64,000 bases of DNA from Ostrea edulis (GCF_947568905.1 NC_079171.1:37014001-37078000); one strand, 5' to 3'. Counted from the first letter of the stretch, positions 45,312 to 50,285 are shown. The notes: generated from the letters alone by a model not told the origin. Numbers and translations: made by a program.

Positions 45312-48300
45312 TTTCCTCAAAAAGGCTCATTTCTTCGGAAATTGATGGACGTCCTTTCTTACGAACAAATGCATACAAAGCCCTAGTTACGCACTTGGAA
45401 GGGAGCAACATAGCAGTAGTGACAGGACTTCCTGGGAATGGAAAAAGATTCCTAGCATGCCAATGTGCGAGGACCTTTCAGGAAGAGAAGCAAATGAAAC
45501 CTTTTATTGTTCAGCACCATCAAGACTGGCAGGTCAACATTTTCTCAGACAAAAAATTCTTTATCATTGTACAAGATTTTTGCGAGGTTGATGTTTTTTC
45601 CGCAGATTTCCGTCAAAATTTGATGAATCATATTGCCGGAATTTCTATTAATATACACGATACGTGCACTCCTCATGCTAACAAACTGCTTATAATTCTT
45701 AGAAAAGAAGTTCTACATTTCATTAGACAACTTTTTCCTGATGATATCAGATTTTCAGAGAAGTTTCTTATCGATGTTTCTTCGCCCCAAATGCGTCTTA
45801 CATCTGACGAAAAGCAAGATATGATGAGGATAAACCAAGTGAAGTTGAGAGAGGACGGAGCTGCATTGATGGAATCCGATTTCCCATTTGGATTTCCAAA
45901 TGCTTGTCATTTCTGTCAGACAATGTCCGAATTTTCCAATCATATAGATAGCATTCTGTCACAACGATTGGAAAGTATGGAGCCCGAGTTTTTTCTAGCT
46001 CTCACAGTTGTATGTCTACGAGGAGGAAGAATCAAAATAAAAGAATTATACGAAAATGAGACATATGCAATCTTGCATCGCACGTTCAAGCAAACCGCAA
46101 AGGGATTTACAAGAACAGTCTCTATGAACTTGCCGTTTATTGTTGACCTCTTAACAGATGTTTTCTTTACAAAAATCACCGAAATTGACACTACATATGT
46201 TGAATATTTGCACAGAAGCGTAAACGAAAACGTTGCATCAATTATATTAAGGAATAATGCAGGTTCTGCATTTCAGTTGGTTCCACTTGACAGATTACAA
46301 TATTTTCGTTCTAAACTTCTGAGGGAAAACCCAAAAATGTCCACAAATACCATTTTTGATTGGATTATCGTGCGAATAACAAGAGAAATGTCCTTTAATG
46401 CCACAGTGAGTGTGATACAATGTATTACAAATCTACCAGAATGGAATGATGAAGAGTTCATCAATATGATCTCGGCAAAAGAAAAATTCGAAGAAGCGTG
46501 TCGGAATTTAAAACCTTACCAACAAGAGTGCTTTCTTGTTTGCGCCATCAGATCAAAATCTTTGAATATCATACGGTTATTGTTCAGCTCTTTGAGGAAA
46601 CATCTGTTCCTTAGACTCTGTCAAGAAAACGAAATAATGTTGAAAGTAGTCGAGACAGGGTCTGTAGAAATGTTTCAGCTTCTGAAGGATTTAGGAGTTA
46701 CACTTGAACATAACAAGTCCCCTCCTATTGCAACTTTGTTCACTGCTGCAAGAAACAACCATTTGCCAATGCTATCATTCCTGACGGAATATGTGCAAAT
46801 AGACCCTTCATTCAGAGATGCACAAGGCTGCTCCCTATTACACTGTGCAGCAAAGTCCGGCTCCGTGGACGTAATGGAATATTTGATAAGGCAAGGTTTA
46901 GATCCAAAAGATTGCTCCGTTGATAACGAAACGATTTTGCATTTTATGGCGATGTTTGGTTCCTTTTCAGCGTTTAAGTGGCTTTGCGAGAGGTACCCTG
47001 GACAGATAGGAATAAAAACTACATCGGGAAAGTCTGTTTTGCACTATGCAGCTTCAAATGAAGACACATACATTTTAATTTTCCTGGTGGAGAATATGAA
47101 AATGAATCCGCATGACAAAACAAACGATGGAGAAACTTTGTTACATATTGCATGTCGCAATGGAAATAATGGCGCTGTTAAGCACATGTTAGAGCGTTAT
47201 GCAGAAATTATTCACGTTCAAGATAAGCATGGGATGACTGCAGCACACACAGCTTGTATCAGTGGAAACTTAGAGGCTATGAAATTGTTGAGTCAGTTTC
47301 ATGACCGTTTCAAAATATTGACAAAGAAGGGCGAAAGTGTCCTGCATTGTGCTTCCATGAGCAGAAGTCTAGAGGTACTTCAATTTGTTATGCGTTTGAA
47401 ATTGCATTCGAAAGATGTGGTTACAACAAAAGGCTATTCTTTGCTTCATTCTTGCACCAGTTCTGCCAATGGGGATCTGGATATTGTGCAGTATCTAATA
47501 GTTCAAGGATTTGATGTTCGACAGCGTAATGAACAAGGACAAATCCCAATGCATTTAGCTTGTATTTCAGGAAATTTAGAAATCGTACGTTTTCTGGTTA
47601 GTAAGTACCCAGAACTTCTCAATGCAAAAGACAAGAAAGGATATGATGCAATATTGAGTTGTGCAAAAGGTCAATCGTTAGAAACTCTGAAATACCTTGA
47701 AAATATGCAATGTTTCACTCATCAGACTTTGCCTAAAGGCAAAGGTATCCTTCATATTGCATGCAAACACAGCTCGGTTGATGTTGTCAAATATTTATGT
47801 CAAATGTATCCACAAGAACTTGAAAGACGTGATTCCAAAGGGAAAACGGCATTACATATGAGTGCACTCAACGCTTCAGTGGGTGTTATACAATATCTCT
47901 TAGATATCGAGGTCGACCATTATGCTTTATCAACGAGTAAACAAACAATTTTACATTTAGCGTGCTACAACAGCAATATAGATATATTGAAATATATCGC
48001 AAAAAAGCTACCTGGTCTAAAATGTCAAAAGGATTATCGTGGATACACCGCTTTGCATTGTTCTTGCGAGGCTAGAAATGAAAGAGCAATCAAAGTTTTG
48101 TTGAATTTGAACGATTTTGATGTTCGCCAGAGAACATTAGAAAATTTTACACCCCTAGACATTGTGTTTGTGAACAGCCCATATCAATATGAAGAGAGTA
48201 CCACACACGCTATCAAAACGATAATAGAGGTATACAAAGAACAGGGCTATTCTGGATCGCTACCAGAAATGATGTTCAGAGATATAGCACAATACCAGGC

Positions 48301-49541
48301 AAATTATTTAGAATCCTTACATGCCTTCGATTATCTTGACCTTGCTGTCTATCCAAAAAGACTGAGAGGAATAAGTGAAAGCAAAATGCTAGCTTTCTCC
48401 CTCGCACTTGCTGATTGCTTGAATAATGAAAAACTTCTAAACAAAGGTGAAAAAACTGTAAATACTGCTTCCTGTCGGTTGCTCAATTTCGTCAAATACG
48501 AAAAACACCACACATGTTCCTTTTCGGAAACACTTATAGAGACGGGACTGACTTGGTCGATGGCTTGGTGCATCGAAATAGCATTTCTATATCCAAAAGA
48601 AATAAGAGAAGTTTGTCTCAGATCTTCTCTTAATATCTTGCGATCAGGGGCAGCTACTGATGTAGTTAAAACATTTGCTAGAGGAATCAGTAAAACATTT
48701 TATATGAAATACAGCGATGTATTGAGTATACACTATGTGTGGGCTGGATTTCTACCTATGTCACATGAAAGGTACAATAACTGCATCGAAACAATAGTAG
48801 TTATAACTAGAAAGACAAACGAAGCAATACAAAGGAGTTTGAAAGAATATCATGGATTAAAAATATATTTCCGAGATTTCAGGTATTTCTCCCCGGAAGC
48901 AAAAGAAATGCTGCATCTCGAAAGTGATGTATCCTGTGACTTGAAGTTGAGGAAAGAAGATATTCAAAGACTGATAAAAAACCACAGCAATATTTCACTC
49001 GTATCAAAATCATCACTCAAATCAATAGGATATGGTACAGCAAATCAAAATCCACCCAAACATTTGAAATCGGTTGTTATTTATTGTAGAGTCAAAGGCA
49101 TAATTCCGGCAGGCGAAAAGCTCTTTCCGACGCAAATTGGAGGGTATCCGGTTGACGTCCGAGAAAGTGCTGTGACTCTTGCTGTCGGTCAAGAGGGTTT
49201 AAAAATGGGAGATATGATAGGGCTAACAGGAGGGGATAAAACTGGAACGGTGGGCGGTTTTATTGATATAGATGCTGACAGAAAGGGTTTCATAACTTGT
49301 GCTCATGTACTAACTTCTCTGGACAATCAAACAGATAATCTACGCCACCAAGAATCGCCCGTAAGCATTATAGACAGAGGAAGGAAGTACGCTATCGGAC
49401 ATGTGGTAAAATCTTTTTTAGATTTGGATGGAACGGATGTTGATGTCACAATAGATGCTGCCCTCGTTGAAGTGCAAACAAGACTGCCAGATAGTGGATA
49501 TTTTACTTCAAATTTAAAGTTATCAAATATTCAACAAGCAG
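45312..49541 (+). CDS. Large internal exon (4230 bp) of STAND-like NTPase / ankyrin-repeat / serine-protease gene
   Basis: Open 1400-aa frame. Acceptor TTTATAG| at 45311, with an in-frame stop just upstream. P-loop GLPGNGKR (45425-45448), ~14 ankyrin repeats (46727-48170), GYPVDVRE, GTVGGF, TCAHV and IDAALV motifs. Phase-1 donor G|GTCTGT at 49542. Confidence 0.9.
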
Positions 49542-49644
49542 GTCTGTATATTAAATTTTCTATCATCTTGAGAAATGAAATACAACAATTATTTTGAGTC
49601 GTTTTTATTCATTATTTTATATAATCAAATGTAAAATCTTACAG

Positions 49645-50285
49645 ATTTTCGAAATCATGACGAACTATCTTTCACCGATGGCGAAACAGCAACCATAGAG
49701 GAATGTAGATCAGGAATGGTACTGAAAGTTGGTGCTGCTTCCGGATTAACACGCGGACATGTCCATTTTGAAAATGCTGAAGCTGTGATCGAAAAAAGTA
49801 GTGTTGTCTTATATGAAAAAAGATATACATTACGTGGACAGATAGAAGTGAAACCTTACGGATGTACTGATTTTATCTCAGATGGGGATTCAGGTTCCTT
49901 CGTTTTTCTGATAGTAAATGGAAACCCCCCTGTACTGAAATGTGTTGGACTAGCGGTCGCTCGAACTGACCACGGGACTTGCTTAATGACACCTATTGAA
50001 AACGTCCTCTCTCGTTTTAATTTGACAATTGATCAGCTTACGAAATTCGAAAATAATTCTGAAGAGGAAGATATTTTAAGCAAGATGTTTCGTAAAATGA
50101 CAGAAGACATGAACAATCAATTTGTGGCTACAAATGAAAATGTATCAGAAATAGAAGTCAGAGTCAATGAAAATGTATCGGAAATACGAAACAGTGTAGC
50201 TCGGATGGAAAATAGACTACATGAGGTCGAAAATATAGTATTCAATAATCCAGAAGACGGCGGGCAAAAATGTATTTTATTATAA
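49645..50285 (+). CDS. Terminal exon of the STAND-ankyrin-protease gene (catalytic Ser and coiled coil)
   Basis: Acceptor CTTACAG| at 49644. The phase matches the upstream exon (G+AT=Asp) and joins the 189-aa ORF containing VLKVGAASGLTRG, DGDSGS and a heptad/hendecad-rich tail; TAA at 50283-50285. Confidence 0.88.

Follow-up and report, generated by a model that had tools for sequence, protein, structure and literature searches.

We analysed 64,000 nucleotides (nt) of Ostrea edulis DNA (GCF_947568905.1 NC_079171.1:37014001-37078000; this whole stretch is hereafter the window, and positions count from its first letter). The plus strand of the window carries LOC125662195, a single four-exon gene whose 1698-amino acid (aa) product, named 'uncharacterized' in RefSeq, combines an N-terminal STAND nucleoside triphosphatase (NTPase) module, an ankyrin array and a C-terminal protease that profile and structure comparisons place in the NAL1/Ssy5 lineage. 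We propose that the protease is an effector activated by oligomerisation – a reading that we consider about 50% probable for the family to which the gene belongs and, because of its P-loop, somewhat less probable for the LOC125662195 copy itself.

LOC125662195 encodes sensor-like, NTPase and protease modules in one chain

The locus shows two long plus-strand open reading frames (ORFs) in different frames, at 45395-49597 (1400 aa) and 49716-50285 (189 aa). Splicing 45312-49541 to 49645-50285 yields residues 77-1698 of the RefSeq protein letter for letter. A word-indexed protein search matched the RefSeq protein to the window at 100% identity, and tblastn of this protein on the window assigned residues 1-75 to a pair of short exons further upstream. 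Splice sites are canonical throughout (AG acceptor at 45310-45311 after a polypyrimidine tract, donor GT at 49542-49543, acceptor AG at 49643-49644), and a script check found all introns of the gene to be GT-AG. The window has zero Ns, and the 5.1-kb coding sequence is fully open. A preliminary description of the locus had joined the same two exons in a frame of at least 1620 aa; the RefSeq model and the canonical splice sites agree with this join, and the spliced frame proved exact but incomplete, with 75 further N-terminal residues that hold no recognisable domain. The parts of the gene are as follows.

43352-43490, + strand: coding exon 1, from Met1 to the first base of codon 47; donor GT at 43491; placed by tblastn
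43660-43746, + strand: coding exon 2, residues ~47-75 and the first base of codon 76; AG at 43658-43659, GT at 43747-43748
45312-49541, + strand: coding exon 3, 4230 nt; runs from the STAND module through the ankyrins, linker and pre-domain into the first part of the protease, whose His and Asp it encodes
45314-46645, + strand: STAND NTPase module, residues 77-520; P-loop domain, helical domain, winged-helix-like hairpin and second helical domain
45425-45448, + strand: Walker A motif, GLPGNGKR; Lys120 kept, Arg121 (AGA, 45446-45448) in place of the usual Ser/Thr
46646-48205, + strand: ~15 ankyrin repeats, residues ~521-1040; Ank families, register ~33-34 aa
48206-48955, + strand: helical linker of ~250 aa, residues 1041-1290; no Pfam family, conservation seen by local phmmer
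48956-49189, + strand: pre-protease domain, residues ~1291-1368; HSN..S and CRVKG.IP.GE..FP...G..VDVRE blocks
49190-49541, + strand: protease domain, exon-3 part; His1407 at 49304-49306, Asp1457 at 49454-49456
49542-49644, + strand: intron of 103 nt, GT-AG, phase 1; divides the protease domain, with the catalytic Asp on its 5' side and the Ser on its 3' side
49645-50285, + strand: exon 4, the remainder of the protease and the tail; stop codon TAA at 50283-50285
49645-50024, + strand: protease domain, exon-4 part; GDSG motif, Ser1568 (TCA) at 49890-49892
50025-50285, + strand: helical C-terminal tail, residues 1613-1698; duplicated 11-residue unit, ends CILL

An architecture of this kind could in principle be an annotation artefact, in which adjacent STAND-ankyrin and protease genes were merged both by the preliminary description and by Gnomon. 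The joining of the exons is known from the gene model and the sequence, and stand-alone protease-module proteins do occur (e.g., P0005, 442 aa; P numbers denote proteins of the protease-module family). However, a single unbroken 4.2-kb exon encodes the STAND module, ankyrins, linker, pre-domain and the half of the protease that contains His and Asp, an arrangement that nearly excludes a fusion created by annotation. The sole splice that the model requires is the 103-nt intron within the protease, at a position common to relatives – many models called for relatives on unspliced contigs stop at this same position – and the full architecture is also present in Saccostrea P0004. We therefore regard a merger as extremely improbable.

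The N-terminus ahead of the STAND module is short and unstructured. No Pfam family, death-fold, TIR or other N-terminal effector was found in residues 1-110, and we rejected an upstream N-terminal effector because neither these residues nor the other window ORFs of at least 110 aa matched Pfam. A membrane or secreted location was likewise rejected – there is no signal peptide and no transmembrane segment, and the highest 19-residue Kyte-Doolittle mean is 1.53 – and the product is predicted to be a cytosolic protein.

The protease is of the NAL1/Ssy5 type

Searches with the single protease sequence against Pfam and the PDB returned sub-threshold (Nal1_C, 13-17 bits) or irrelevant (adhesin, E 0.066) matches, and a 61-sequence family profile together with structure prediction was needed to place the domain. 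An exhaustive phmmer search with residues 1270-1612 against 1.84 billion cluster representatives recovered 523 representatives of the protease-module family at E<=1e-3 (252 at E<=1e-10); our alignment A1 comprises 61 full-length modules. The A1 profile matched nine NAL1 chains in the PDB with E values from 7.5e-10 to 3.9e-9, the next match having an E value of 0.47. Among the 61 modules, 25 match Pfam Nal1_C and 15 match Peptidase_S64 (both at E<=0.01), and eight match Trypsin_2.

Consistent with the profile, NAL1 occupies the top 33 matches when the modelled protease module is compared with the PDB by Foldseek. Yeast Ssy5 is among the top Swiss-Prot matches (query 18-341, E 1.6e-10), in an alignment that covers both the pre-domain and the catalytic domain. 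By rigid-body Z score, S1E streptogrisins rank above NAL1 (21.6 vs 18.7). The features of Clan PA are all present: a double beta-barrel fold and a triad in the order His, Asp, Ser with GDSGS. Across the 61 family members the His and the Ser are each conserved in 61/61, and the acid is Asp in 53 and Glu in eight. The TCA codon at 49890-49892 encodes Ser1568, in agreement with the catalytic Ser named at 49890 in the preliminary description, whose guess of a chymotrypsin-fold protease related to NAL1/S64 was borne out by NAL1 ranking first in both profile and structure comparisons. By these comparisons the protease is a predicted Clan PA enzyme of the NAL1/Ssy5 (S64-like) lineage with an intact triad.

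Immediately ahead of the protease we observed a conserved pre-domain. What had been described as a ~330-aa linker is a real region, but it resolves into the ~250-aa helical linker and this ~80-aa domain. A Lys (K68) and a Pro (P72) of the pre-domain are invariant in 61/61 sequences of A1, and the Gly, Glu, Phe, Pro, Asp and Glu of KG.IP.GE..FP...G..VDVRE are near-invariant (A1 positions 27-91). The domain is modelled as a helix with beta-strands at a predicted local distance difference test score (pLDDT) of 85-93. Foldseek aligns the pre-domain plus protease (query 3-340) with NAL1 residues 67-438, a range that spans the ATP-binding domain of NAL1; judged by this alignment range, the pre-domain may be the counterpart of that domain.

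The pre-domain block is more conserved than most of the protease proper, and is a candidate nucleotide site (as in NAL1), autoprocessing element or docking element.

The N-terminal module is a STAND NTPase with a non-canonical P-loop

The preliminary description had read the N-terminal region as a P-loop module with a STAND fold. The fold is supported by Pfam and by structural comparison. Pfam nSTAND3 (PF20720) matches residues 91-247 (window 45356-45826) with 45.3 bits where the cut-off is 27.2 (E 9.7e-12), over profile positions 1-149 of 155. An AlphaFold2 model of residues 76-530, which rests on an alignment (A2) of seven homologous modules only, has a pLDDT of 77.3 and a predicted template-modelling score of 0.76; it shows a five-stranded P-loop domain, a helical domain, a winged-helix-like element with a beta-hairpin, and a further helical domain. 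The top 50 Foldseek matches of this model in the PDB are all STAND NTPases (probability 1.00), among them SAMD9 (E 1.3e-6), an Avs5 filament (E 5.7e-6), Apaf-1, NLRC4, NOD2, NLRPs, Dark, CED-4 and Avs4. The top 30 in Swiss-Prot are likewise all STAND proteins, including Dark, SAMD9L, PknK, Apaf-1, NPHP3, MalT and HET-E. Template-modelling scores are low (0.25-0.39), as expected for multi-domain conformers.

The term 'NLR-like' in the preliminary description holds by architectural analogy, but the NTPase is nSTAND3 rather than NACHT and there are no leucine-rich repeats (LRRs): neither NACHT nor LRR has a Pfam match in the LOC125662195 protein. The protein is thus outside the NACHT-LRR NLR family. 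It has no significant match to Avs or other PADLOC models, and is placed in the nSTAND3 clade by Pfam and fold.

The module is real, but its Walker A motif reads GLPGNGK-R rather than GK[ST]. We gathered NTPase relatives by local phmmer among the proteins fetched through the protease module; a word-indexed homologue search with the NTPase region found only LOC125662195 and its paralogue. GK[ST] is present in five of the six aligned relatives, and the paralogue, which is 90% identical, has GKS – a pattern that indicates a recent change. The Walker B column holds Asp (hhhhDG) in five of six aligned relatives, Gln then Asp in LOC125662195, and Lys-Asn in the orthologue-like Saccostrea P0004. LOC125662195 thus has neither a canonical Walker A (GxxxxGK[ST]) nor a canonical Walker B (hhhhD). 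While homology of the module to STAND proteins is secure by profile and model, NTP hydrolysis by this copy is not assured; nucleotide binding may persist without hydrolysis, or the switch may be impaired.

The nearest paralogue, P0002, is relevant here. It lies on the same chromosome record (L001:8843-13726, where L001 is OX387711.1 37127624-37150629) and is collinear with LOC125662195 at 90-92% nucleotide identity, with an intron 1 nt shorter. RefSeq names it 'alpha-latrotoxin-Lg1a-like' because of its ankyrins and gives it a product of 1001 aa. We identified two in-frame stops in this locus, one at L001 nt 9686, within the STAND helical region, and one at 13004, close ahead of the donor of exon 3; the annotated product is therefore the piece between them, and the paralogue looks like a recently broken copy. 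A broken paralogue at 90% identity suggests birth-and-death evolution, which is typical of immune gene expansions.

These observations raise the possibility that LOC125662195 is itself a decaying or NTPase-dead copy of the family, an inert or constitutive scaffold whose frame happens to be intact. Its GKR against the GKS of the paralogue and the GK[ST] of most relatives, its non-canonical Walker B, the already broken neighbour and the large lineage-specific expansion of the family all point in this direction. However, the 5.1-kb coding sequence has no interruption and its splice sites are canonical, Lys120 of Walker A is kept, and Arg121 could be an individual polymorphism. Between LOC125662195 and the paralogue (stop codons excluded), the ratio of nonsynonymous to synonymous substitution rates (dN/dS) is 0.23-0.57 in every domain, a figure that averages both lineages; the P-loop domain has 0.23, the protease segment of exon 4 has 0.28 and the ankyrin array has 0.30. 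The value for exon 4 supports coding constraint on that exon. Several STAND proteins, moreover, signal by nucleotide binding or exchange without fast hydrolysis. On this evidence we consider a dead copy quite unlikely.

The protease module is fused to NTPase and death-fold scaffolds in bivalves and a brachiopod

To define the family beyond LOC125662195 we examined the sources and domain composition of its members. The sources of the best matches that were looked up are all bivalves (Ostrea, Saccostrea, Tegillarca, Mercenaria, Dreissena, Pecten, Potamilus and Sinanodonta) or the brachiopod Lingula. The protease module is always C-terminal, behind an N-terminal extension with a median of 249 aa that reaches ~1500 aa. 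Pfam scans of long members identified the following fusions.

nSTAND3-protease without ankyrins: P0006, P0013, P0044/P0164 and P0174, with weaker matches in P0154 and P0182
nSTAND3-ankyrin-protease, full: Saccostrea P0004
Weak NPHP3_N-like P-loop, ankyrins and protease: P0179 (Tegillarca), P0119
Ankyrin-protease: P0003, P0117
CARD-NACHT-NLRC4_HD2-protease: P0135 (Lingula anatina)
Roc-COR-protease: P0069 (Lingula anatina)
DED-protease: P0101 (DED E 3e-12)
CARD-protease: P0106 (CARD sub-threshold)
HSP70-like, NHL or DUF4559 N-termini with protease: P0021, P0100, P0127

P0164 and P0174 are O. edulis genes, the former on the same chromosome record as LOC125662195. P0101 and P0106 are both on NCBI assembly GCA_021730395.1, which we take to be Mercenaria mercenaria. 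Tandem copies of the protease module are possible in two members: P0117 (Pecten maximus, 1999 aa) has several protease-profile matches within residues 754-1983, and P0052 (Dreissena polymorpha, 1999 aa) has several within 1489-1981. The first ~1490 residues of P0052 contain no Pfam domain at E<=0.001.

These architectures place the module, across the family, beside death-fold and NTPase scaffolds, both in a brachiopod and in bivalves. This set of partners belongs to the vocabulary of apoptosis and innate immunity, and it is these domain associations, our main argument, that suggest an immune or cell-death role.

The same family invites a non-immune explanation – regulated proteolysis in development or nutrient signalling, with the STAND module and ankyrins acting as a scaffold. 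The two characterised eukaryotic relatives of the protease are developmental (NAL1, which degrades TOPLESS-related corepressors and FZP) or nutrient-signalling (Ssy5, which processes Stp1 and Stp2); ankyrin arrays are general protein-binding scaffolds; and some members have HSP70-like, NHL or DUF4559 N-termini. However, networks of immunity and apoptosis typically show both what recurs here, fusion to DED, CARD, CARD-NACHT, Roc-COR and nSTAND3, and large, species-specific copy numbers with pseudogenes. A core developmental function would predict one-to-one conservation across animals; this was not seen, the best matches looked up being all from bivalves or the brachiopod. A non-immune role therefore appears distinctly improbable.

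A proposed model of assembly-dependent protease activation

We reasoned from rice NAL1 that activity may depend on assembly. The NAL1 trimer is inactive and the hexamer active: the loop that carries the catalytic His is productive only at the trimer-trimer interface, and the trimer is stabilised by a small ATP-binding domain that precedes the protease (PMC12012508). In the mechanism that we propose, the ankyrin array would bind a ligand or guard a host target, and this event would free the STAND module to oligomerise. Oligomerisation would gather and order the C-terminal protease modules, which would be active in the assembled state only, and the active protease would cleave substrates or the receptor itself to give a caspase-free immune or cell-death output. 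Sensor, hub and effector would thus be united in one chain, in the manner of an apoptosome or inflammasome that has its own protease built in, and by analogy with the sensor-STAND-effector proteins that bacteria and fungi carry as single chains. Consistent with the protease being the effector, Pfam identified no other candidate output domain in LOC125662195 or in the other nSTAND3-protease proteins.

A broader version of this model, which we hold tentatively and think on balance doubtful, is that bivalves and brachiopods possess, besides the caspases, a second family of executioner proteases that are coupled to death-fold and STAND domains and need no caspase. In these proteins an oligomerisation-switched NAL1-like module, mounted on nSTAND3, NACHT, Roc-COR, DED or CARD, would cleave death or immune substrates. 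By analogy with the related bacterial gasdermin-linked protease, the substrates could possibly be gasdermin-like pore-formers, and LOC125662195 would be the all-in-one form.

Alternatively, the protease may be a regulatory or autoprocessing device, or a sensor, that cleaves itself in the manner of Ssy5 or the NLRP1 FIIND, with output through partners. As a variant, it could be bait for protease inhibitors of pathogens, with output through, for example, death-fold proteins or caspases. Ssy5 ranks among the top structural matches, in an alignment that takes in the pre-domain as well as the catalytic domain, and the invariant Lys and Pro of the pre-domain suggest a conserved intramolecular function. 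In Lingula P0135 the N-terminal CARD occupies the usual effector or adaptor position and the protease the usual sensor position, and the DED- and CARD-protease fusions could be recruited components rather than autonomous executioners. This explanation must, however, contend with the nSTAND3-protease proteins that lack an alternative output domain; the conservation of the triad in 61/61 also fits an enzyme with substrates in trans equally well. We consider a purely regulatory protease unlikely.

Several further points weigh against an oligomerisation-activated effector. It is a possibility that the protease acts in regulation or autoprocessing and not as an executioner, and the position of the protease in P0135, in the place usual for a sensor, suggests room for such a role. 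With its non-canonical Walker A and B motifs, LOC125662195 is not assured of an NTP-driven switch. The Nal1_C score of LOC125662195 is below the cut-off (17.0 vs 26.1 bits; Saccostrea P0004 scores 22.5 bits). PADLOC defence models searched with both modules gave only a marginal match to PDC-S73 (E 3.8e-4 over 75 residues), and the possible link to gasdermins is one of structural resemblance only. Diversifying selection on the ankyrins was not seen: the array has a dN/dS of 0.30 in the sole pair tested, a weak test in which one partner is broken. Finally, a literature search found no paper that mentions LOC125662195.

Ankyrins, linker, tail and surroundings

The ankyrin array matches five Ank Pfam families with E values of 1e-44 to 6e-73 (best Ank_2, E 5.7e-73). 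The array reported in the preliminary description is therefore real, and its ~14 repeats become ~15 in our count, in register between residues ~515 and ~1040. The helical linker that follows is kept in close paralogues, and local phmmer found its last ~100 residues in more distant family members as well.

The C-terminal tail had been described as a coiled coil. We rejected a strict heptad coiled coil: hydrophobic periodicity did not support one, and the matches to coiled-coil families are weak. The tail is better described as amphipathic and helical; it holds an 11-residue unit in two copies but lacks a strong heptad signal.

The last four residues, Cys-Ile-Leu-Leu (50271-50282), match a canonical CaaX (CaaL) box, through which geranylgeranylation could anchor the protease end to a membrane. 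The box is absent from the 90% identical paralogue, and the only other plausible boxes among fetched members are in P0010 (CSII) and P0011 (CSIM). We rejected a family-wide CaaX signal, as a Cys at position -4 was found in six of 178 fetched proteins, about the chance level; the CILL of LOC125662195 may likewise be due to chance.

The window is otherwise gene-poor at 1-43000 and 50400-64000, where GC content is 0.29-0.41. Ten other ORFs of at least 110 aa in the window match no Pfam family at E<=0.001, and tblastn found no second member of the protease family within the window. No RNA family reached its gathering threshold in Rfam 15 anywhere in the window, and no tandem repeats were found around LOC125662195.

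Implications and comparison with known systems

STAND hubs that activate proteases are at the core of animal apoptosis and inflammasome signalling. To our knowledge, every animal case characterised so far relies on a caspase that is recruited as a separate protein. Bacteria and fungi are known to have sensor and protease fused in a single chain. In the animals described here, a chymotrypsin-fold protease of the NAL1/Ssy5 type is wired into STAND, death-fold and Roc-COR scaffolds in many paralogues, which suggests that invertebrate immunity or cell death has a protease arm, so far undescribed, that works without caspases. Should the proposed mechanism hold, lophotrochozoans would have arrived at induced-proximity activation of proteases with a different protease fold. 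LOC125662195 would then offer a compact system – one polypeptide with one active-site Ser – for the study of STAND activation, and the family would provide candidate immune genes for oysters, which are hard hit by Bonamia, OsHV-1 and Vibrio. Plant NAL1 gains an animal sister family, and the domains with which that family is combined give a hint of what the fold did ancestrally.

In our literature searches we met no account of an animal STAND or death-fold protein that carries a NAL1-like protease and no paper describing the architecture of LOC125662195, in keeping with the initial impression that it has no characterised counterpart. A 2021 eLife survey of such architectures mentions trypsin-like effectors for bacterial systems only.

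Among the individual systems, rice NAL1 (PDB 8PMG, 8HAU, 7Y77) is closest in its protease, yet it is a stand-alone plant protein with a developmental role, without STAND module or ankyrins. Yeast Ssy5 (S64) resembles the oyster protease in structure, and 15/61 members of the oyster-type family match Pfam Peptidase_S64. Ssy5 is the intracellular, signal-activated endoprotease of the SPS sensor, with an inhibitory N-terminal part; it too lacks ankyrins and a fused STAND module. It cleaves itself from its prodomain and is freed when the prodomain is destroyed, activation occurring by phosphorylation and ubiquitin-dependent loss of the prodomain downstream of a membrane sensor.

Apaf-1, CED-4, Dark and the NLR inflammasomes share with the oyster protein the STAND fold and the logic of a hub with a repeat sensor, and they activate proteases by induced proximity, as we propose by analogy for the oyster protein. 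They use an NB-ARC or NACHT NTPase and recruit a separate clan-CD caspase through an N-terminal death-fold domain, whereas the oyster protein uses nSTAND3 and carries a predicted clan-PA serine protease in the same chain, C-terminal to the repeats. Avs5 and SAMD9/SAMD9L include the best structural matches of the oyster NTPase and likewise place sensor, STAND module and effector in a single chain; Avs5 is annotated with Pfam nSTAND3 and has been noted as SAMD9-like (bioRxiv 10.1101/2025.07.08.663546). In these proteins the effector is N-terminal (SIR2 in Avs5) and the sensor TPR-like, while the candidate effector of the oyster protein is C-terminal.

In Swiss-Prot, the structure that ranks second against the protease module (E 6.8e-11) is Ga0098714_109514 of Bradyrhizobium tropiciagri (P0DV47), which is encoded next to the bacterial gasdermin (bGSDM) Ga0098714_109513 (bioRxiv 10.1101/2021.06.07.447441). 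Bacterial gasdermin-associated proteases resemble the oyster protein in that the protease is fused to repeat or NACHT sensor domains, and the same study put forward the idea that fusion of a protease to a sensor links recognition straight to the cleavage of gasdermins. P0DV47 differs in being prokaryotic and in having its protease at the N-terminus of a 785-aa protein. Near the oyster gene no gasdermin partner came to light, though no search aimed at one was made. Set beside these systems, the nSTAND3-ankyrin-protease gene, annotated but uncharacterised and with a function predicted from sequence, is a new variant on the theme of a STAND protein with a fused protease; what is new is the protease lineage, the domain order and the host kingdom.

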